NCBI GenBank assembly: GCA_047495785.1
Contig: JBLDXI010000042.1
Location: forward strand, 4,092,001 to 4,156,000
Direction of reading: 5' to 3'
DNA length: 64,000 bases
Source: Lepidodermella squamata
Taxonomy: Eukaryota > Animalia > Gastrotricha
Below are positions 11,289 through 24,173 of the stretch, in pieces. Each line of letters opens with the position of its first letter. Positions within the stretch are counted from its first letter, which is position 1. The position numbers and the translations under genes were made by a program. Below the pieces are notes generated by a model. That model saw only the letters and a list, made by a program, of their open reading frames with translations, made no database searches and was not told where the DNA came from.

Positions 11289-11522
11289 GTAAATAAAAAC
11301 CGGTGTAAAGTATCAAGAGAAGTTCAATCAATCCTCTATATTGTTTTTAAAAATCTGTTAAAAATGCGTTGAGAGATGCGCATGAAATCGATTGTGCACC
11401 AGTAGATAAACAATTTCCGCAGGGCTGATCAGCTATGAGCTGTATTTACTTTGGTTACAAGGTAATACTGGCTTTTTTAGAGTTGGTACTTTGACTTGAA
11501 AATTTTGAGCGACTTTTGCGAT

Positions 11523-12704
11523 ATGGAACTCATCAAATCGCTCCTGATTTTTACGTCCCCCTTAGTTTTGCATCTTATTTCAGCAGCCAGTAGAGAGAAC
11601 GATATTCGATTTTTGATATTGAATGAATGTAACTTTCTACCCGGAGTTACTCATCCTAATGAGAATAACGTGTCCGCCATGCCATCCCCTATGACCATGG
11701 GTTTTTCATACAGTCGATTGATAAAGCTTGATGACTTGGAGGAGACTGTCACGTTGAGTGGGTACGCGTTTCTCGCCATGAAATTGGATTGCATTAAGGA
11801 AGCAGCTCTTCGATACAATGAATCTCGCGTTGTGCCGCCATATTGGAGCCTTACCAATACCAACGAGTATTGGAGGCCAGGCTTAGTCAATGATAACAGG
11901 TTAGGTAATTTTGACATGGGACATCAATTTTGCAAGCAATTTTCATATCACAGTGTGGATGACTATGGCCTCACTAGCAACATATTTCCTGCCATCACTG
12001 CGAGGCCGTTCGATGGCAATATTCAACTGGCTTTCGGAGGTCTATTCAACGTATTCTGTGAGATGAAGTTCGAGAAGTTCCCATTGGATAAGCAACATTG
12101 CTCTCTGGACTTCGGCCTGTGGCTGCCAAGCGCCGTCATTTCATTACAACTCCAGACCATCATCGATAGCCCAACTTTCGCTTCCGCCAATGTCGGTTGG
12201 AATATTGGCAAAATTTCGGCAAACTTCTCTCTAAAAAGCTATACTGAGACTAACTTCCATGCTGTAAAATTTCGCTTCGAACTAATTCGACTGCCCGACT
12301 ACTTCTTACTAAACATCGTTGCACCTTGTTTCATCCTAACAATTGTCCAGTTTGCTGGGGCTTTCTTACCTCCTGATACTTCTGAGCGATCAAGTTTCGC
12401 TGTTACCGTTCTGCTGGCATTCACAGTAGCCCAGAGCCAGGTTCTCGCGAACGTGCCAAAGACGCCGAGCAACATCTTGCTATCTGACCTGCTTTTCGGT
12501 TTGATTGCTTCATCAATGATCATCACTTGTTATTGCGCTGTCATGTGCGCTTGTTGCGAACTGGACGAATCTTTCAATGGAGTCGTTTCATTGTGGCGCA
12601 TCAAAGGTCGGAAAAGCCGATGTATCGACGCCGCGTTCTTTTCTATACTGGCTATCATTGTTTTCATTTTTGTTACTGCAATGTTTATTGCAATCACTAC
12701 TTGA
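11523..12704 (+). CDS. Cys-loop (pentameric) ligand-gated ion channel subunit, cation-type, intronless
   Basis: Signal peptide, YWRPG loop-A motif, Cys loop CEMKFEKFPLDKQHC, pre-M1 R-x-P-x-Y-F, four TM helices, and M2 SERSSFAVTVLLAFTV. Confidence 0.88.
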   Translation: MELIKSLLIFTSPLVLHLISAASRENDIRFLILNECNFLPGVTHPNENNVSAMPSPMTMGFSYSRLIKLDDLEETVTLSGYAFLAMKLDCIKEAALRYNESRVVPPYWSLTNTNEYWRPGLVNDNRLGNFDMGHQFCKQFSYHSVDDYGLTSNIFPAITARPFDGNIQLAFGGLFNVFCEMKFEKFPLDKQHCSLDFGLWLPSAVISLQLQTIIDSPTFASANVGWNIGKISANFSLKSYTETNFHAVKFRFELIRLPDYFLLNIVAPCFILTIVQFAGAFLPPDTSERSSFAVTVLLAFTVAQSQVLANVPKTPSNILLSDLLFGLIASSMIITCYCAVMCACCELDESFNGVVSLWRIKGRKSRCIDAAFFSILAIIVFIFVTAMFIAITT

Positions 12705-13666: not shown

Positions 13667-16009
13667 TTAATTACCACCGTTCCACTTGTACACGCACACG
13701 CGGCATCTGCTGATATGATCCGTAATCTCATCGCCCCAGCTCTTCTTCAAGATCTTGGCGCCAGGACGACGCTTTCCGCACAACTTCTTATCGTTGGCAG
13801 TGGCGACATCAACAGCAGTGGTGCTGGTTGCATTGACAGTTTGGATGGTTAGCCAATAGCTAGGGGAAGAAAATAAGATGCATTTCTTTTTTCAAGTTTG
13901 TTCCCTTAATTACCTGGTCCTGGTGGGGAAGAGTAAGCAGCTGTCACCCGCGGTGCATTCGACGAAAGGATGGGACCTGTAATTTGGAAGACATGATCCA
14001 GGCGATTCAAGATTCTGACCACCGCCCATTGCGCCGGTGGTATGCTGAAAAACCGAAAGCGATATGATTTAGATCTGGAAGAATAGCAAAGTTACCATGA
14101 CAAAGCTGTATCCAGTCCACAGTTCGCTTGAGGTGTATCCAGTTATCTGGAAGCAGTCCGGTAACTTGTTAGTCTGCGAATGGAAGGCGATGACTGGGCC
14201 GTGAGCCTCGCAAACTGCGCAACGACTGACGTAGTTTTCAGACTCGGAGCGAGGGACAACTTGGGTATCAGAGCCGAGAACGCCCGACAGCCAGCTTGAG
14301 GAAGTCGCGCGATTCTTGAAGTGGCAACGGCCATCGCTGCCGCAGAACATGAACGGCATTGGCTCGAACTCGCGAACGCAAGAGCCAGCACCGCCAAGGT
14401 CCTTGACGTGACCACGGCCTTCGTCTTCAGTGTGCAGTAGTGAATAGCCAGTCCAGAGGAGTGTTTCGCCACTTGCACATTTAATGTCGAGATTCGGAAG
14501 CTGGGAGTGGCGAACGTAGATGAACTTCTGAGCGCCATCAACAATAGGACCATCATCACCACGAGGACCCTTGCATCCGACAGGGCATTCGCCAGAGTCA
14601 CCCATCTTACCCTTGAGACCCTTATCGCCCTGGTATCCTTTCGGGCCTCGCTGACCGTTCTGGCCCTTGTCTCCCTTGAGGCCTTTTTCGCCTTTCTCAC
14701 CTGGAGCACCGTTGCGGCCTGGAGCGCCCTTTTCACCCTTTTCGGATCCAGCATAGCCCTTATCACCTCGTTCACCTGCGGCCCCACGGCTACCCGATGA
14801 CCCGTCTTGACCGGGAAGTCCGTCGCGGCCAGGCTCACCAGCGGTACCCTTGATGCCCTTTGTGCCCTTGACACCCTTGTCGCCACGTAAACCCTCTGGC
14901 GTGGCACCCTTATCTCCCTTATCCCCAAGAGATCCAGTTGGTCCCTTCTTGCCGCGAGCACCTTGGTCACCTTTGTCGCCCTTCAAAAATGAACTCGTGT
15001 AAGTCGGATGAATTATTTAGCCGTTATTCTTACCATATCTCCAGCAGGCCCTTCCACATCACTGCCATCAGCGCCAAGTTGGCCCTTTTCGCCTTGGAAA
15101 CCTTTCAGGCCACCGCGGTCGGGGTAGTTATCGCCCACTTCTCCCTCGTCGCCATCATCGCCCTTATCTCCCTCCTCACCGGGTCTTTCCGTGCCGTTCC
15201 AGCCGGGCTCGCCAGTTTCGCCAGCAGTGCCCTTCGGACCTTGAGTACCCGGCTCTCCGTAGTCACCTACGTCGCCGTTTCTGCCTTTCTCGCCCTGGAT
15301 GAAAAAGCATACTGAATTTAGGATAAATGAAAAGGTTCAGGAATTACAGCAACTCCGTAGCAGCCTTTAGCACCCTTCGGCCCAGGCGCACCCGGCCTGC
15401 CCTTCTCGCCCTGAGCTCCAGGAAGACCCGGGTAACCATTATCACCCTTGTCACCAGGCGCGCCGTTCTCAGCATCGGCACCACGGTGACCACGTTCGCC
15501 AGTTGGGCCTTCGTAGCCTTTAGGACCTTGAGGTCCAGGAAGTCCAGCGTAGCCCTTCGGACCTTGGGGTCCATCGTCACCCTGTGAAATGTATTAGGAG
15601 GCTGGCAATATTAGCTCTAGTTTTACCGTTCTGCCAGGGTATCCCTGTGGTCCAGGTTCACCTTGGTCACCTTGATCACCCTTCGGTCCTTGTTGACCAC
15701 GTGCACCCTTGGCACCTTTCGAACCCTGTACTCCGTCGCTAAAAATCACAAAACATTACGAAAAGCCAGGAAATTATGATAATTCACTTACGCGCCACAG
15801 ACACCTTGAGGGCCGGTGCGACCATAGTCACCCCTTTCACCGACATCACCCGCAACGCCCTTCGTACCTTGCTCGCCTCGCCTGAAGCAAAGGCCGTCGC
15901 GTTTCACGCGATCAAGATAGAGATTGACGGGACTCTCGACAGCTGACACAAAATCGCCGGCGATAATAACGGCGCCCAGAACAAAGATGGCGGCACTTGC
16001 GCTGTACAT
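13667..16009 (-). CDS. Short collagen IV-like chain A (signal peptide, Gly-X-Y domain, complete NC1), about 7 exons
   Basis: Gly-X-Y repeats across the exons. NC1 motifs: [51 protein letters not shown]. Stop codon at 13667-13669. Confidence 0.88.
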
Positions 16010-16645
16010 CTTTGTCCGCTCTGTTTAAACACCCTATATATGAATATGTGTACAATATCAGAAGGTTAGCAGCAGTAGCACGGGAAATTTTCAGCTGATT
16101 TTTTTCTATTATTCTGTTCACCGGCGTAGCGCGAGATCGGACGCACGGTTGCATTCGTTACGATGCGAGGTTTTTTCGTCGGAATACAGCTCGAAAACAA
16201 GCAGCGACGGCACCTGATGGAATGCGCGGTGCAACAGCAAGCGGTGGAAAGTGTTTTTTGAATAAAATTAACCCAACCATGCTTGGCTTTCAATTCGTCA
16301 TGCGGCGAAGTCCATCTGAACCCTTGCCCTCGCTAAACGAAACCAGGTTTACACAGGAATTGAATTTAAAAGTGGAAGAATGAATCAGCAAATAAACTGT
16401 TTTGATGATAAAAAAGAAATCGGAAAGTTCAATCGATCACATATTTTTATTTCGTATAATATCTCTCTTAGCAATCGATCATATGGCAGTTTCTGTTGTA
16501 ACACAGGATATTTTGGACAGACTACAATTTCAGAAGGAGCTGACATAAAGGTCAAACGGCGCATTACATTTTGTTTCACAGAAAATACACAGGATAGAGT
16601 TTTTGAACGATTTATTCCTTTCAATTTTTCAGAACCGGCTATTTT

Positions 16646-18832
16646 TTAGCTTTGCTGCTCGTAGCTGCAAACAACACACTGGCTCAGCTTGTCCATGACA
16701 GAGCTCGGGGTCAACAGTGCCGTCTTGTTGCTGTGGGCTTTCGCGGCGAGCCAGTAGCTAAAAAGTCCAAACATAATTAAGATGAAATGTAAAGAGTAAC
16801 AAGCTTACCTAGCGCGGTTTCCGAACAGATGGCAGTTGCCGTCAGCGTTGCATTCAATGTAGGGGTGGCTGCGGAACTCTGGCAAGCATGAACCAGGGGA
16901 TTCGAGCTGTTGGCCACTGCCCATAGCACCGTCAGTGTGCATAATGTGGCTGATGCCGTGCCACAGATAGCGCCAAGACCTCGGGCAGTTCGGCCTCTGG
17001 TTATTCTGCGAGTGGAACGCAATAACCGGGCCCTTGGCAACGCAAACGTGGCACAAGCTGATATACTTGATGACACCCTCTTTGCACAGCATGTCCTTGA
17101 ACTTTTCGGTGATGGGCGCTGCTAGCCAGTAAGACTCAGCGTGGCGAAGGGATTGCAAGCAAACTCCGTCACCGTTGCAAGTCATGAAGGGCATAGGATC
17201 GAAATGCTTAACGCAAGATCCGGCTTTTCCGAGGTCTTGAACGTGAGCCCTACCCTCGTCGGCAGTGTGCATAAGGGAGTACCCGGTATACAACAGATCA
17301 TGACCAGCTGGGCAAGGGCGCCCGTCGGAAGTTGCAGTACTTTCGTGGCGTTGCAGATGTCTGGCGTAAATGGTAAGAACATCACTGTTCCTCGCGGCAC
17401 CCGGGGCTCCTTTGTCGCCACGTTCGCAGGCACCCTGCTTGAATAAACCCGATTCACCCTGGTCACCCAACTCGCCATTATTGCCTTTCTCGCCCTTTTC
17501 ACCCGTGTTTCCCTTATCACCAAGATCACCAGCAGGCCCCTGGCGACCTTCGATTCCCTTATCACCCTTGACACCCTTCTCTCCAGGAGGGCCAGGGGTA
17601 TACAGCGTGTCGTCATCGGCAGAATCGCCCTCTAGGCCAGGGAAACCCTTCTCGCCTCGGTTACCTTTCAGGCCACGAGCACCAGGGCGACCAGTTTGCC
17701 CCTTGTCGCCTTGGTCACCCGGATCACCGCGATCGCCTCGCTCGCCGTCCTCGCCAACAGTTACCCCACCGTTCTCACCCGGGGCGCCTGCCTGACCTGC
17801 ATCACCCTTGAATCCCTTCTCCCCCTTGTCACCTTGTATTCCCTCATTTCCTGGATAACCTGGTCGCGAAACACCAGGCTGACCTTTAACACCGGCCTCG
17901 CCCTTGTCACCCTGCGCGAAATCAAATTCTTAATTGAAAATATGAGCAATAACTTAAAATCAAACCTCTTCACCGAAATAGAGAGCTGTTCCATTGCGAC
18001 CTGATCTGCCTTGCTCGCCCTGTAATATATTTCAGCCATTATGTCGTCATTTTCCACTTCCACTTTCGACTTACCTTGACGCCAGGCAAACCGCGGCTTC
18101 CTGTCACAGGTTGACCCTTCGGGCCGCGAAGTCCTTTGTCGCCCCTATCACCCCGAGCTCCTTCGGAACCAGCAGGGCCTCTTAGACCAGGAGTACCGTA
18201 GTCACCCTAATTTGGTATAACGAAGAGATAATGCGGAGATACGTCAAATTTTTCAAAGTTTACCGTGATTCCCTTGCAGCCACGATCACCTGATGCTCCA
18301 GGTTTGCCCTTTTCACCCCTTTGACCTTGCGGACCGGGAGCGCCATCCAAACCGTCGATGCCAGCGCACCCTGGATGTCCCTTAGCTCCGTCACTGCCCG
18401 GCTCTCCTGGATAACCAGGCTGGCCCTTATCACCTCTTGTACCCTGAACAGAATTTTTTCAAGGAATATAGCGGTAGAATTATAAGGCCTTACAGGTGAT
18501 CCAGGAGCTCCGTAGTCACCCCTATCACCTTTCAGACCAGTGCGGCCAGGGGATCCAGGTACACCTGGCTCGCCATAACCAGCGTTGCCCTTATCACCAG
18601 ATTCGCCTCGTCGACCAGGTTCTCCAGGGTCACCAGCGACGCCATCGGCAGCATCACGGCCTTGAAAACCCTTCACGCCCCGCTGGCCACGGTCACCCTT
18701 CTCGCCCCGATCACCCGTCACACCACATTCGCCGGGCGCTCCGCCACAGTCGCAATCCTGAGCTTGTGCGAATGAACCGGCAAAGAGCGCCAGCGCCAGG
18801 ATGCCGGCCTTAAGCAACCGACAAGACACCAT
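16646..18832 (-). CDS. Short collagen IV-like chain B
   Basis: Signal peptide [27 protein letters not shown] motif, Gly-X-Y repeats, and NC1 ([21 protein letters not shown]; [23 protein letters not shown]; LSQCVVC). Confidence 0.88.
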
Positions 18833-19489
18833 ATCTAAATCAGTCCGATAAAAAAAACAGCAACGGTGAGATTCGTAACCTAGCGATAATAGCGTTAGGG
18901 CTGGTGGAAAAAATAGGAGAAAAAATTAATTAGCTTGTAACGCTGGATAACACGGGATTCGGTATGGACGAGCTCGCCTACAGTTTCAGTGAGAGCTGGG
19001 TATGTGCTCATCAAAACAACGCTACGCGCCGGCGAAAAAATTGACTCGCCCGGTATAACATCGTAATTAAATGCACGAGAAACTTGCAATGTTAAAACGA
19101 GCGTTTTTTTCTCATCACCCTACAATTAGGTCCGGACTAAAGGCCACCAGGATTTAAAAGCGATGAATCATTATTTTCATCTGATGAACATGATTGCCCG
19201 TAACTTGTTAAAGCCAATGATCGATATACTTGTATGACCAAAAAATCTCAAAGATTTTAACTTTTCGAGTTTTCGTTTTATTATCGACATTTTCGGGTTA
19301 TTGATTTTTTATCATTTGTGATGGCAGTATTATCATTATTCACGTCTAACATTCACGGGTCATCATCAGATGAGCTATATTTCGAATAAAAGCACAGGAC
19401 GGGTGTTGCAATATCGGAGACAAAATATAATCAGTACACAGGTTTCAACAACAACTTGAATTCACTCGACATAGATTTAAAGGCAGTTT

Positions 19490-22025
19490 TTAACGACGCT
19501 TCTCAAGCAGCGGGTTGCGGCGTTCGAAATCGTGCTCACCGTCGATAGGTTCGATCAGCTTGTCGTTCGAGCAGACAATGCAACGGCTAACGTGACCGAG
19601 CACGTCGGCGGCATTCTTGATCATACTCGTTGTCTGTTCCGGACCAGTAGCCATCAACCAGTAACTGAAAAGCAATATGAAAGTCAGAACGCGCAAAAAG
19701 GAGACATCAACCGATCACTTACCTCATCTTATCAGAGAAGAAGAAGCAAGTTTGGTCAGCGTTGCATTCCAGGAAGGGATGGGCGTGGAACTTGGGCAGG
19801 CACGAACCTGGCGATTCCAGGCGTTGGCCACCAGCAGCTCGTCCAACGGAGTGCTGAAAAGAGAACAAGTTAAGCATTTTCTGAAGTTCAGTGACAAAAA
19901 TACCATGACGTAGCTGTAGCCAGACCACAAAGGAGTCCAGTTCTTAGGGCACTCAGGTGAGCGGTTCTTTTGGCTGTGGAACGCAAGCACAGGGCCTCGA
20001 GCCATGCAAACTGAGCAACGGCTGATGAAAGGCTTGATTGCATCTCCCCTAAGCAGCTGTTCCGGCCGCTTGTCAGCATCTTCGAACGACGCCGAAAGCC
20101 AATACGATTGAGCGGGCTGGTGGCCAGCTGAGGTAAGCTCTTCGTCCGTATCAAAGGCCTTGAGGAAGGGAGTCGGCGTGAAGCTGCGAATGCATGAGCC
20201 GGCTGCGCCAAGATCCTGAACGTTGCTGCGGCCACCGTCTTCAGTATGAAGAAGGGAGTAGCCGTTCCACAAGAATTTGTGGTAGCTCAAGCAGCCGCGA
20301 TGCTGCGACAGCTCCTTCGGAATCATTGAGTCTTGGAAGTGACGAGCGTAGATTTGGCCACCCTGAATGAAGGGCGAGTCGCCCTTTTCACCCTTAGGAC
20401 CATCATCGCAATCGGCGCCTCCCTTGGTGCCTTTCGGGCCCTGAAGACCTGCGTCACCTCGGGTACCACGCTCTCCCCTTTCGCCATCATCTCCGACGTC
20501 ACCGCGCGGTCCGGTGACGCCCCTGTCACCCGGCAAACCATCGTCGCCCTGTTCACCCTTCGGGCCATAGTTGATCCGGCTACGACCGCGTTTGCCCTTT
20601 TCACCATTTTCACCATCATCACCCTTTTCGCCAAGCTCGCCCTTGGAACCCGCATCACCCTTGTCACCCTCGGCACCTCTGTAACCGGTTTGGCCGGCAA
20701 TACCGGGTTCGCCCTTGCGTGAAATTCCAGGGCGACCAGCTGTTCCCTTGGGGCCTTGCTCGCCAATATCGCCAGCTGCACCAGGGTTGCCAACTGGGCC
20801 TTTATGACCCTTCGGACCAGGAATGGCTACGCCGTTGTCACCCTTAGCACCCTTATCACCTCGGACACCCTTGGGGCCGCGGAAGGCTTCGGCGCCATTG
20901 AAACCTTTCTCTCCCTTATCACCCCTCTCACCCTTGTCTCCCTTATCGCCAGAGATACTGTCACCACGCTCGCCCTTATCTCCTTGGTCACCCGGTACTC
21001 CACGGAGACCAGGTGCTCCTGGATATCCTTTTTCGCCCTTCTGGCCATCAGTGCCCTGAAATACATGCATATTATGTTGGTTTCAAGTGCAGCAGATATA
21101 AATACTCACTCGGTCTCCATGGTCACCGCGGCGGCCGGGGAATCCCGGGTCACCAACAGCACCATCGATGCCAGGCTCGCCTCTTCTACCATTCTGACCA
21201 TCACGACCGCGAACACCCTTTTCACCTTTAGCGCCTCGCTGACCGTCAGCACCAGGTAAGCCGCGGAGGCCTTGGTCTCCATCAGGGCCCTGGGGTCCTT
21301 CGCTTCCGGGTTCACCGTTTTCACCATGCTCACCGGAGGGGCCCTGAAATTAAACCTTAGCAAAATGAAATTCGCGATAAAATTCTTACCGGAAGACCAG
21401 GCAAACCATCAGGACCACGCAGCGTGTCGCCTTTCTCGCCCTTCTCTCCACGCTGACCCTGGTCACCATCGGGACCTGGTCTACCAACGGAGCCATCGCT
21501 GTAAAATGTCTTAGTTCAGTAAGTGATGCGCTTAATTTTTTCGTTACAAACCTGCCATCGCGACCAGCATAACCGCGTTCTCCATCGTCTCCAGTCGGGC
21601 CCTTTTCACCTGGAGCACCCTTGGCACCTGGTACACCCTTGCATTGACAGTTACGACGGGCGTCGATCATGTTGCACTCTGCGCTATTTGCCGACGAAGA
21701 AACTTCTTCTCCCTGAAAAGGACGCGGTGTTGAGGGAATTCTGCTGAGAATATAGGAAAGTTACCGGCAGAACGAAGGCGACAGACGAATCTCCAGCGCG
21801 GGGTCGAGCCTGAATGCGGCGAACGCGATTGGTCGTGACGCGACGACGAGGAGGTTTCGGGGCGGCTTGGGCGTCAGCAGTGCTGGCTGGAGCAGCGCCG
21901 CCTTGAAGTGCCTGGTCTTCCTGAGGTCCGCTTCCGAAAACCGTGATATCATAGCCGAACATTTTGAAAGCTTCGACGGCGCTTGCCGCCAACAGGACGG
22001 GCAGCAACAACTTGACCAATAACAT
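19490..22025 (-). CDS. Short collagen IV-like chain C
   Basis: Signal peptide MLLVKLLLPVLLAASAVEA, NCQCKGVPG motif, Gly-X-Y repeats, and NC1 (QDLGAAGSCIRSF; [23 protein letters not shown]; VSRCIVC). Confidence 0.88.
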
Positions 22026-24173
22026 CTTCTAAAAGGTGTCTACAATAACTGAAGAACAGGCCTGATCTCAAATAAAAACAAACAGGGTAGCATTGGAGTT
22101 GAAATTATTCATTGGTATTTTTTCTATTATTATGATGAGATGGTATTATCTTCTGCGTGTTTTTCCAATTGTTCCGGAATTTCAGCCGGTCACGATGCTT
22201 GAATCAAGCAACGGTGCAGTTGTTAATTTTCACGGCTAGGCAACACGGGGCGATGGACAATTTGCACTGTTCAGCTACGTGAATAAATTATTGTTGGACG
22301 CGGAAAAAAATGGGTTGCTTTGTTCGCTGTATCTTGTTTCGAATGAAAACACGCGCTACCGTTGCTGCTGCTATAGGCTTGACACGTCGGTTGTTATTGC
22401 AATGCTTCGAAAGAAAGACGGCAAACTTGAAACGGCAATAATAAAATCCACTTTCCTTTGAGCTGAAACGTGAACTTCTAAGATCATCTACGGCTTGAAA
22501 TTGCCAAGAATTTAGTCACCTCGTGCCGGTTCAATTTATCTCAGTCAGCAATTCGGTTATTTAGAGCAAGCTTTTTTTCTCGTGAAACTGCCCGTAACAA
22601 GTAACCTGTGAAGTGCAACAATGGCCTAACAAAACGATGTTTTAATGCAAATAAATAGGACGAATCGTTTATTTTTGCCATGAATAGCAGCGAATGCTAA
22701 CGAATGTAAAAAATAATAAAACACAATCAGAAAATTAAAAAAAAAATTAAAAAATCAGATAATAAACAGATACCATATCCATGTGGTGATTCACAATAAT
22801 ATTTAAGTAAAGAAAACTACATTTATGAGTATTCTTTGTCACGCATGATGCCTCGGGAGTATTTTTTCTAACTCCCACAATATATTAACAATGTTTTCCT
22901 TCAGGGTCTGCATTAGCTGGAAATAATTTATTCAAATAATGTTGCCTTGAATGTTCAACAAGGAAATGAAGGAAATACCTTTAGGTACAATTCTTACTAC
23001 TTCACTTTCGCAGAAACACCTCACATGTCTTGGGATACACTAATTTTCGATAGGAGCTTTCTCAATACCAAACCCGATTAATATCAACAAGAAGAATTGA
23101 TGCAGCAGTGCTACTAAACAGCGCTAGTGCGTCATTTGAAACATGGATGCAATGGCTGCCGTAGGTGAAATCAAAGGGCAGGTGTAAGCCTCGACAACCC
23201 ATGTATTCAGGTCAATGATTCTAAGTATTTTTCACCAACAGCCACGACATGCCGACCTAATGCTGCTGCGGAACTAATTCGGTAGTCGACACCAAGCGTC
23301 CGGATGAAAATCGAATCTTCGCTTGATATTCGGATGAGGATAAAAATGCAATAACGCTGTGTTGTTCGCAAATATGTACCATGCAAATAGAAATAGGGTC
23401 TGAAATTCGACGCACAACGAAATTTTCGAAGATGGACGAGTAATCATTCGTCAAATAGTTCGGAAATTTCATGAAATTGTTCGGAATGTGAAGGAGAAAG
23501 AGAAATCGAATCCCGTAGATTTTTAATTTGGTGATTTTCGATATAAATCGCAATTTCGCCTTTATGAACATATAACTGACGCTGATGCCAGAATAACACT
23601 CGGAAATTCAAACTGAGTCTGCAAAAAAGTCTGCACAAATTTTGCATTTTTTGGTTTTTCGGTTCCAAACGCTGCATTTATTAAGTAGTTTTCTGTATTA
23701 ATTTCGCATCGGAGAAAATATTTTTTCAAAATGATTAATTCTGGGCCATAATTATATTTGACCTTCACATATGCCGCTAAAAAATCTCTGACCGCGATAC
23801 GGCGCGCTGCGACGGTGATGGAAGCGTGGCGCTCGCACGATTCTGCTTCAGCCTCTTGTCATCTTCGTTCAGTCCGATCGATTGATTTAGTTTCGATTAT
23901 TTATATTTTGTGAAGTGCACCATTTTCTTGATACTCCAGTCGTGTTTGACAACAGTGTTTCCTCTGTCAGCTTTAAAGGTAAGACGTTGTTTATTGTTGA
24001 ATCACCTTTCGCAAATCAGCACTCTGTTCCCAACTCAACCTTAGTTGGGCTCAATTTTTTCAATTTGCTACATAAATTACTGATCGAAGCTTTTAGAAAT
24101 CATCACTTAATATGATTTTTGCGTTTTAATTGGTTACATTTTATTTTTCAGGTTTTCAATCGCACCATTCATC

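Follow-up and report, generated by a model that had tools for sequence, protein, structure and literature searches.

Bilaterian collagen IV is usually treated as a near-invariant pair of chains of ~1,700 residues, with the spongin-type chains and the ctenophore expansion as exceptions. A locus in the gastrotrich Lepidodermella squamata raises the question of what a cluster of much shorter genes of this kind encodes, where these genes belong in the family and whether their products work together. The window that we analysed is a stretch of 64,000 nucleotides (assembly GCA_047495785.1, contig JBLDXI010000042.1, positions 4,092,001 to 4,156,000 of the forward strand), and at 13667-22025 its minus strand carries three intact head-to-tail genes, here called A, B and C. 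A first-pass annotation, made from the sequence alone, had described them as miniature collagen IV genes whose products may co-assemble as a heterotrimer. They are secreted short chains of the collagen IV family encoded by three separate genes, with separate transcripts seen for B and C only, and they form a lineage-specific short-chain branch of that family with a conserved three-gene cluster. Beyond this, we lean with moderate confidence towards a joint reading in which a short collagen IV subfamily (A, B, C and a fourth gene, D) includes an A-B-C protomer and relies on disulfide-based joining.

Three intact genes and their messages

Exon borders of A, B and C were set by coordinate from the sequence and checked by script, and database searches and the fold run were made on single exons. 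All 17 introns of the three models are GT-AG and 45-58 nt long, internal stops are absent and the Gly-X-Y repeat continues unbroken over the junctions. The genes span 2.34 (A), 2.19 (B) and 2.54 kb (C) and encode 639-740 amino acids (aa), in line with the 2.2-2.5 kb and roughly 600-750 aa given by the first-pass annotation. They lie in a region with a G+C content of 54-59%, compared with ~42% in the surroundings, and the collagen-like and C4-like open frames of this region are confined to the minus strand. All three match Pfam Collagen and each matches Pfam C4 in two stretches (E = 1.1e-34 for A, 1.4e-50 for B and 3.3e-32 for C; 111-171 bits), which, together with the intact models, bears out their description as three head-to-tail collagen IV genes. 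The models, with their basis in brackets, are as follows:

13667..16009, minus strand: gene A, short collagen-IV-family chain, 677 aa, 7 exons at 16009-15792, 15738-15627, 15581-15348, 15294-15034, 14980-14096, 14044-13914 and 13859-13667 (GT-AG model, Pfam, PDB match)
16646..18832, minus strand: gene B, 639 aa, 6 exons at 18832-18494, 18443-18264, 18206-18075, 18019-17966, 17911-16809 and 16757-16646 (model, RNA-like contigs, Pfam C4)
19490..22025, minus strand: gene C, 740 aa, 7 exons at 22025-21765, 21712-21552, 21498-21390, 21343-21110, 21055-19904, 19853-19723 and 19664-19490 (model, RNA-like contigs, Pfam C4)

The RNA-like contigs came from a search of sequencing runs, which gave X1, a DNA run, and X2 and X3, the contigs of which look like RNA; contigs of all three were aligned to 16031-22030, a segment that covers genes B and C. 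Every intron of B (five) and of C (six) is missing from X2 contigs, with the joins at the exact modelled bases, and X3 contigs skip three introns, one of B and two of C. The DNA run skips none of these introns and spans the whole gap between C and B. In the gap between B and A the X2 depth rises from 0 at 16031-16230 to 1.8 at 16231-16430, and the end of the B message is marked by the start of an X3 contig at 16444 and a T-rich loose end in X2 at 16428. Between C and B the X2 depth is 0 at 18831-19430, and the start of an X3 contig at 19305 marks the end of the C message. Since the gaps contain stretches without X2 depth and B and C have message ends of their own, B and C are transcribed as separate messages, and neither gap is an exon of a longer gene:

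16010..16645, no strand: B/A intergenic gap, including the 3' untranslated region of B with its end near 16428-16444 (X2/X3 contigs)
18833..19489, no strand: C/B intergenic gap, including the 3' untranslated region of C with its end near 19305 (X2/X3 contigs)

Differences between the window and the runs are predominantly synonymous (9 synonymous and 0 non-synonymous in the exons of B, 13 and 3 in those of C), and these 22 synonymous against 3 non-synonymous changes indicate purifying selection. Close spacing on the same strand is what one would see if A, B and C belonged as exons to one or two longer genes, or were duplicates in decay, a view to which we give next to no weight. Each gene has its own start codon and leader, stop codon and 3' end, and the frames are intact; RNA depth is absent between the genes, variation is mostly synonymous and a relative carries one-to-one orthologues. 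The readings as parts of longer genes and as pseudogenes were rejected on the intact frames, the separately spliced messages of B and C and the mostly synonymous variation. The proposal of three separate short chains therefore held, with RNA-like contigs splicing B and C as modelled and leaving the gaps uncovered.

A pyrimidine tract followed by AG lies 2-11 nt before each of the three ATGs on the minus strand (16010-16025, 18833-18845 and 22026-22040), an arrangement that fits spliced-leader trans-splicing; no spliced leader was seen in the contigs aligned to 16031-22030.

A short-chain branch of the collagen IV family

How the trio relates to the rest of the family in this genome was addressed by a six-frame Pfam C4 search of the whole assembly (121 Mb), with 15 flanks mapped for Gly-X-Y runs. 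The 59 matches correspond to ~22 genes. Two of them are full-length collagen IV genes by Gly-X-Y mapping, with collagen-coding spans of 5.3 and 5.4 kb, which answers the first-pass suggestion to look for full-length chains elsewhere:

C11:1375100-1385000 (L032): full-length collagen IV gene
C14:380300-390200 (L034): full-length collagen IV gene

No opposite-strand collagen gene, as a head-to-head partner, was found within ~3.3 kb upstream of either. The presence of these two genes means that the short chains are additional to ordinary collagen IV. All other C4 genes of the genome are short, and A, B, C and D are a lineage-specific subfamily within a radiation of ~18 short or helix-less NC1 genes. 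Gene D, the fourth member close to A, B and C (C42:4175000-4184900, L043, ~62 kb from gene C), was read from open frames only. It has a helix of ~433 aa, by eye richer in Pro, two junction cysteines in a C-x3-C motif ~45 residues before NC1 and an N-terminal FGFN motif in common with gene C. As the helix of D is longer, the shared length of A, B and C is not a family-wide property.

Additionally, an exhaustive library search with the NC1 domain of B returned three close proteins, at 69, 62 and 55% identity, with all others at ≤46%. The 69% protein sits on two 12-kb metagenome contigs (L046 and L047) from two samples, which are 99.8% identical and carry three genes, C'-B'-A', in the same order and orientation as the trio in the window. 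With A' and C' modelled by homology-guided splicing and B' by enumerating junctions, the relative's proteins measure 734 (C'), 643 (B') and 694 aa (A'), and NC1 identity to the relative is 63% for A, 67% for B and 60% for C. The orthologue of D, P0019 (L048), comes from the same metagenomes on a different contig, and D pairs with the 55% protein in the tree. The orthologue pairs and the shared gene order indicate that the three chains were already distinct and adjoining in the common ancestor of two clearly diverged animals. Within the available span, no synteny was seen between the regions that flank the relative's trio and those in the window, and a word-based protein search with the NC1 domain of C retrieved canonical collagen IV fragments only (34-42% identity) and no orthologue. 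Upstream of the relative's trio, L046:703-2376 encodes a secreted-looking protein of 557 aa with a weak Kringle match, which is without a counterpart in the window.

The NC1 domains of the three chains measure 231-258 residues and are 43-47% identical to one another:

13670..14542, minus strand: gene A NC1 domain, aa 422-677, 12 canonical cysteines plus one extra
13778..13780, minus strand: extra 13th NC1 cysteine of gene A, aa 641, in an enlarged subdomain-2 loop; kept in A'
16649..17392, minus strand: gene B NC1 domain, aa 409-639, 12 canonical cysteines plus one extra
17084..17086, minus strand: extra 13th NC1 cysteine of gene B, aa 511, within KDMLCKE in a subdomain-1 loop; kept in B'
19493..20374, minus strand: gene C NC1 domain, aa 483-740, 10 cysteines

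The pair missing from C, and equally from C', is of the Cys65/Cys71 type in subdomain 1 (region 20105-20167). The enlarged loop of A is the one that carries Lys211 in human alpha1, and Cys511 of B falls opposite human alpha1 Thr97 in the alignment, four residues away from Met93. At the first HSQ position the chains read HSQ (A), HLQ (B) and HFQ (C), and the second HSQ is present in all three. The NC1 domain of B aligns almost without gaps to residues 10-187 of human alpha1 NC1 (PDB E = 5.5e-49), and the first part of the A domain likewise aligns to alpha1(IV) NC1 in the PDB (E = 6.8e-42). A structural model of the exon-5 part of B NC1, built from a 25-row alignment (predicted local distance difference test, pLDDT, 85), matched solely collagen IV NC1 domains in the PDB, with a template modelling (TM) score of 0.86-0.87 and a root-mean-square deviation (rmsd) of 2.0 Å to human alpha1/alpha5; against a collagen IV cluster in the ESM Atlas the TM score was 0.89, the rmsd to collagen IV NC1 domains ranging from 1.8 to 2.0 Å. 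The two C4 stretches per gene and this fold match confirm the full collagen-IV-type NC1 domain that had been claimed.

In a maximum-likelihood tree of 47 NC1 domains, a canonical clade with 100/100 support united vertebrate alpha1-6, arthropod, mollusc, sea anemone and amphioxus chains with the animal's own two long chains, and every short chain of the genome fell outside it. A second, quick tree that added short 'alpha(IV)-like' predictions from snail, amphioxus and fishes gave the same split (Shimodaira-Hasegawa-like approximate likelihood ratio test, SH-aLRT, 99). In these trees A/A', B/B' and C/C' pair at 99-100% support, the D/D' pair is also supported (all pairs 96-100%) and the A-B-C-D group has an SH-aLRT of 98. 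The distinctness from canonical collagen IV that the first-pass annotation had asserted is thus upheld by the position of A, B and C, and in these trees the short family is a lineage of its own, so far seen only in this animal and its environmental relatives. The short 'collagen alpha(IV)-like' predictions of amphioxus, snail and fishes, considered as members of the same family, were rejected because they stand on the canonical side.

That A, B and C might instead be this animal's spongin short-chain collagens, of the type labelled 'short-chain collagen C4-like', appears very unlikely. The layout of a short helix with an NC1-type end is common to both, both fall outside the canonical clade, and with C4-bearing clusters excluded the short-chain collagen C4-like clusters come nearest by language-model features (score 0.95). 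Spongin NC1 domains, however, have no HSQ, miss four of the collagen IV cysteines, carry three cysteines of their own and have no domain-swapping region (Fidler 2017), whereas all three chains of the trio retain the second HSQ (A the first as well), A and B have the 12 cysteines, and the alignment to human alpha1 NC1 is nearly gap-free. Moreover, the ESM Atlas clusters of short-chain collagen C4-like proteins are without Pfam C4, against 111-171 bits in the trio, and the B NC1 model superposes on them at a TM score of only 0.49-0.50 (rmsd 4.4-4.5 Å over ~133 residues). The 12-cysteine pattern (in C minus one pair), HSQ, Pfam C4 and the fold match (TM 0.89 versus 0.5) are the reasons why we do not file these genes as spongins, in agreement with the original distinction.

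Other short members of the family were also observed in the genome. At C2:1044655-1047012 (L031) there are two tandem genes with a complete NC1 domain; 9.5 kb of that strand contain no stretch of three or more consecutive Gly-X-Y triplets, and we read both as stand-alone NC1 genes. Short collagen IV genes form another head-to-tail trio at C24:472665-482256 (L040, L041); its members are mutually close, stand near a gene of contig C15 in a clade apart from A, B and C, and have 1, 1 and 0 junction cysteines. On the same contig, at C24:362500-372400 (L038), a divergent gene has a short collagen region followed downstream by several weak C4-like pieces.

Helix register, cysteines and the case for a heterotrimer

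Whether A, B and C assemble with one another is a question on which the segments before NC1 bear most directly:

15899..15910, minus strand: RVKR of gene A, aa 34-37, a basic motif of furin type preceding the helix; identical in A'
14543..15877 (introns included), minus strand: gene A triple-helical span, aa 45-421, 7 interruptions; helix cysteines at aa 71 and 184
14573..14587, minus strand: C-x3-C motif at the gene A junction (aa 407 and 411), 10-14 residues short of the helix end; kept in A'
18725..18754, minus strand: gene B N-terminal cysteine cluster, aa 27-36
17393..18742, minus strand: gene B triple-helical span, aa 31-408, 8 interruptions; helix cysteines at aa 139 and 169
17426-17428, minus strand: gene B junction cysteine, aa 397
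21638..21968, minus strand: gene C non-collagenous N-terminal domain, aa 20-112, with C-x8-CQC just before the helix; kept in C'
20375..21637, minus strand: gene C triple-helical span, aa 113-482, 7 interruptions
20408-20410, minus strand: gene C single junction cysteine, aa 471

All three chains begin with a hydrophobic leader, judged by eye, which accords with the signal peptides of the first-pass annotation. The N-terminal cysteine motifs that it listed are likewise all present, as CF with a single cysteine in A, CDC..C in B and C-x8-CQC in C; the motifs directly before the helix are kept in the orthologues, and A' has more cysteines than A. The N-terminal domain of C, of 93 residues, contains basic RRRV/RVRR motifs (aa ~58-75) that are found in C' too, and no Pfam family matched exon 1 of this gene. 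Judging from these motifs, N-terminal processing at RVKR in A and at RRRV/RVRR in C is possible.

The helices are of nearly equal length (377 residues in A, 378 in B and 370 in C), each with 116-120 triplets and 7-8 interruptions, and GDK and GEK are their most frequent triplets, so that the short, GEK/GDK-rich helix originally noted was recovered. The chains had also been called proline-poor. Pro is indeed low (8.5-8.8%), but this does not distinguish them, the genome's own long collagen IV being Pro-poor as well (10.0%). Lys, at 7.4-9.5% compared with 2.6% in that long collagen IV, and KG[DE] motifs, rather than low Pro, set the short chains apart.

Counted in residues from the helix end, interruptions lie at 197, 177, 154, 119, 66 and 14 in A, at 202, 179, 158, 123, 76 and 16 in B and at 194, 171, 150, 115, 68 and 13 in C, that is, six interruptions at matching distances in all three chains, and the match holds in both species. 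The relative's helices measure 375, 376 and 370 residues (A', B' and C', the last counted including two triplets after the last break). Junction cysteines number two in A, one in B and one in C, and in both species each of them lies 10-14 residues from the helix end; with four cysteines at one level, two interchain disulfides are possible in A-B-C, whereas a homotrimer of B or C would have three such cysteines. Mid-helix cysteines stand 237 (A) and 239 residues (B) from the helix end, with values of 235 and 237 for the relative, and the NC1 cysteine counts of 13, 13 and 10 (A, B, C) are identical in the two species. The conserved trio, the helix length, the register and the odd cysteines fit an A-B-C heterotrimer, which on this sequence evidence is plausible but unproven.

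A second possibility is that A, B and C are three tandem paralogues, each homotrimeric or assembling in another stoichiometry or with other partners, used in different tissues or stages, with the cluster a duplication remnant under shared regulation. We hold this to be a serious though less probable explanation. Tandem duplication is frequent in the family (the C24 trio, the C2 pair and a C15 cluster), the mutual NC1 identity of the three chains is low enough to allow each its own specificity, the RNA-like runs seem to contain less of gene A than of B and C, and the NC1 domains of human alpha1, alpha3 and alpha5 can crystallise as homo-oligomers, according to PDB titles. Against it, the odd number of junction cysteines in a B or C homotrimer would be accompanied by three extra NC1 cysteines, again odd, in B or by none in C, and the 2+1+1 junction cysteines, the 13/13/10 NC1 counts, the A-237/B-239 pair, the equal lengths and the gene order are all kept in a relative at 60-67% NC1 identity.

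The residues used for assembly in canonical collagen IV differ in the trio. For the chloride-driven NC1 hexamer these are the switch residues Arg76, Asp/Glu78 and Glu175, Arg/Lys179 of group 1, and Phe/Tyr64, Asn66, Arg76 and Tyr/His189 of group 2 (PMC6527180). Read from alignments against this residue list, the three chains have:

Gene A: 76 R, 78 T, 175 E, 179 G
Gene B: 76 R, 78 A, 175 E, 179 D
Gene C: 76 Q, 78 A, 175 E, 179 D

The genome's own long chains retain R76, D78 and E175. With positions 78 and 179 lost in all three chains, hexamers are not expected to assemble by the canonical chloride-driven route. In canonical collagen IV, Met93 and Lys211 are the sulfilimine cross-link residues that join opposite trimers. 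At position 93, A has Val, the Met of B is two positions off (aligned to Pro95) and the loop of C is without Met; neither A nor B has a Lys aligned with position 211, and the Lys of C is one residue off.

Each chain has a leader, a short Cys-bearing N-terminus, a helix of ~375 residues (~105 nm if fully helical) and a complete NC1 domain. In the A-B-C arrangement that we favour, the NC1 domains probably act as the chain-selection and trimerisation module, as in canonical collagen IV, and A, B and C would most likely enter one protomer, held by interchain disulfides before NC1 (2+1+1 cysteines) and at mid-helix (A and B). With the chloride-switch, chloride-binding and Met93/Lys211 positions lost, end-to-end joining would need another route, plausibly an A-B disulfide between the unpaired cysteines of the Lys211 (A) and Met93 (B) loops at the trimer-trimer interface, and the N-terminal cysteine clusters may also contribute. 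Precedent for a cysteine-based NC1 cross-link exists in the ctenophore cysteine-loop, found in chains without Met93/Lys211 (PMC5395295).

Several points weigh against this arrangement. Word shares are 0.25 in X3, all explained by the contigs of B and C, and 0.57 in X2, and this arithmetic suggests that gene A is absent from X3 and at most partly present in X2; such under-representation would fit badly with a 1:1:1 protomer. The parity of the junction cysteines fits A-B-B or A-C-C equally well, and the matching interruptions and lengths could be inherited and kept for reasons other than assembly. Tandem short collagen IV arrays exist elsewhere in the genome (the C24 trio) without such signs of co-assembly. 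The Lys211-type loop of A is ~18-20 residues longer than the human one, for which reason the position of its extra cysteine is not exactly mappable. Finally, assembly without chloride has been reported for Ctenophora, Ecdysozoa and Rotifera (PMC10694668), so that loss of the chloride site is compatible with NC1 hexamers.

A bolder and, in our estimation, unlikely proposal is that the whole ~20-gene short radiation, with an obligate A/B/C heterotrimer, forms some matrix apart from basement membrane, such as the gastrotrich cuticle, scales or adhesive organs, through NC1-driven trimerisation and disulfides at the sulfilimine sites. If true, the collagen IV module would have been recruited independently into an exoskeletal matrix, a parallel to the cuticle collagens of nematodes, whose processing site the RVKR of gene A recalls.

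Just downstream of gene A, an intronless open frame of 402 aa at 11496-12704 on the plus strand matches Pfam Neur_chan_LBD (5e-10) and, weakly, Neur_chan_memb, and appears to be a Cys-loop receptor-like gene.

Comparison with known collagen systems

Collagens VIII and X also combine a helix of a few hundred residues and conserved interruptions with a C-terminal globular trimerisation domain, and collagen VIII has two different chains; their C-terminal domain, however, is C1q-like rather than NC1/C4, and there is no homology to the trio outside the helix. With canonical collagen IV the trio shares the two C4 repeats, the NC1 fold, an interrupted helix and a CxC just before it, and the aligned part of NC1 is 38-46% identical to vertebrate, arthropod, mollusc and cnidarian chains. 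It differs in a helix of ~375 rather than ~1400 residues, in a head-to-tail arrangement (also in the relative) where canonical genes usually stand head to head, in the absence of Asp/Glu78, Arg/Lys179, the group-2 residues and Met93, in the extra unpaired cysteines of A and B and the disulfide missing from C, and in a helix rich in Lys and Asp/Glu. The paired oddities of the trio (two versus one plus one junction cysteines, the loop cysteines, the lost disulfide) make it a testable case of how NC1 selection and cross-linking can be rewired, and it would be a compact natural system for NC1 heterotrimer coding, whose chains of ~640-740 aa are easy to express.

The spongin short-chain collagens, reportedly described by Exposito in 1991 and by Aouacheria in 2006, resemble the trio in a short collagenous domain with an NC1-related end and in their coexistence with ordinary collagen IV in invertebrates, but the NC1 domain of the trio is full-length, of collagen IV type and a strong match to Pfam C4.

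Ctenophore collagen IV of Group II (Fidler 2017) offers a further parallel, a lineage expansion of up to 20 genes there and ~20 here, with unidirectional tandem arrays, no Met93/Lys211, extra NC1 cysteines as a proposed substitute cross-link and stand-alone NC1 genes. Compared by description, the Group II chains have an NC2 domain and a cysteine-loop of 11-13 residues, whereas the trio has a single cysteine in each of two internal loops; by eye, no 3-4-Cys NC1 extension of the ctenophore type is present in the trio, only the single extra cysteine in A and B. The ctenophore chains are not described as short-helix forms in Fidler 2017, and the trio occurs in a bilaterian alongside canonical chains: an animal with ordinary collagen IV plus a large family of one-third-length chains bearing a full NC1 domain.

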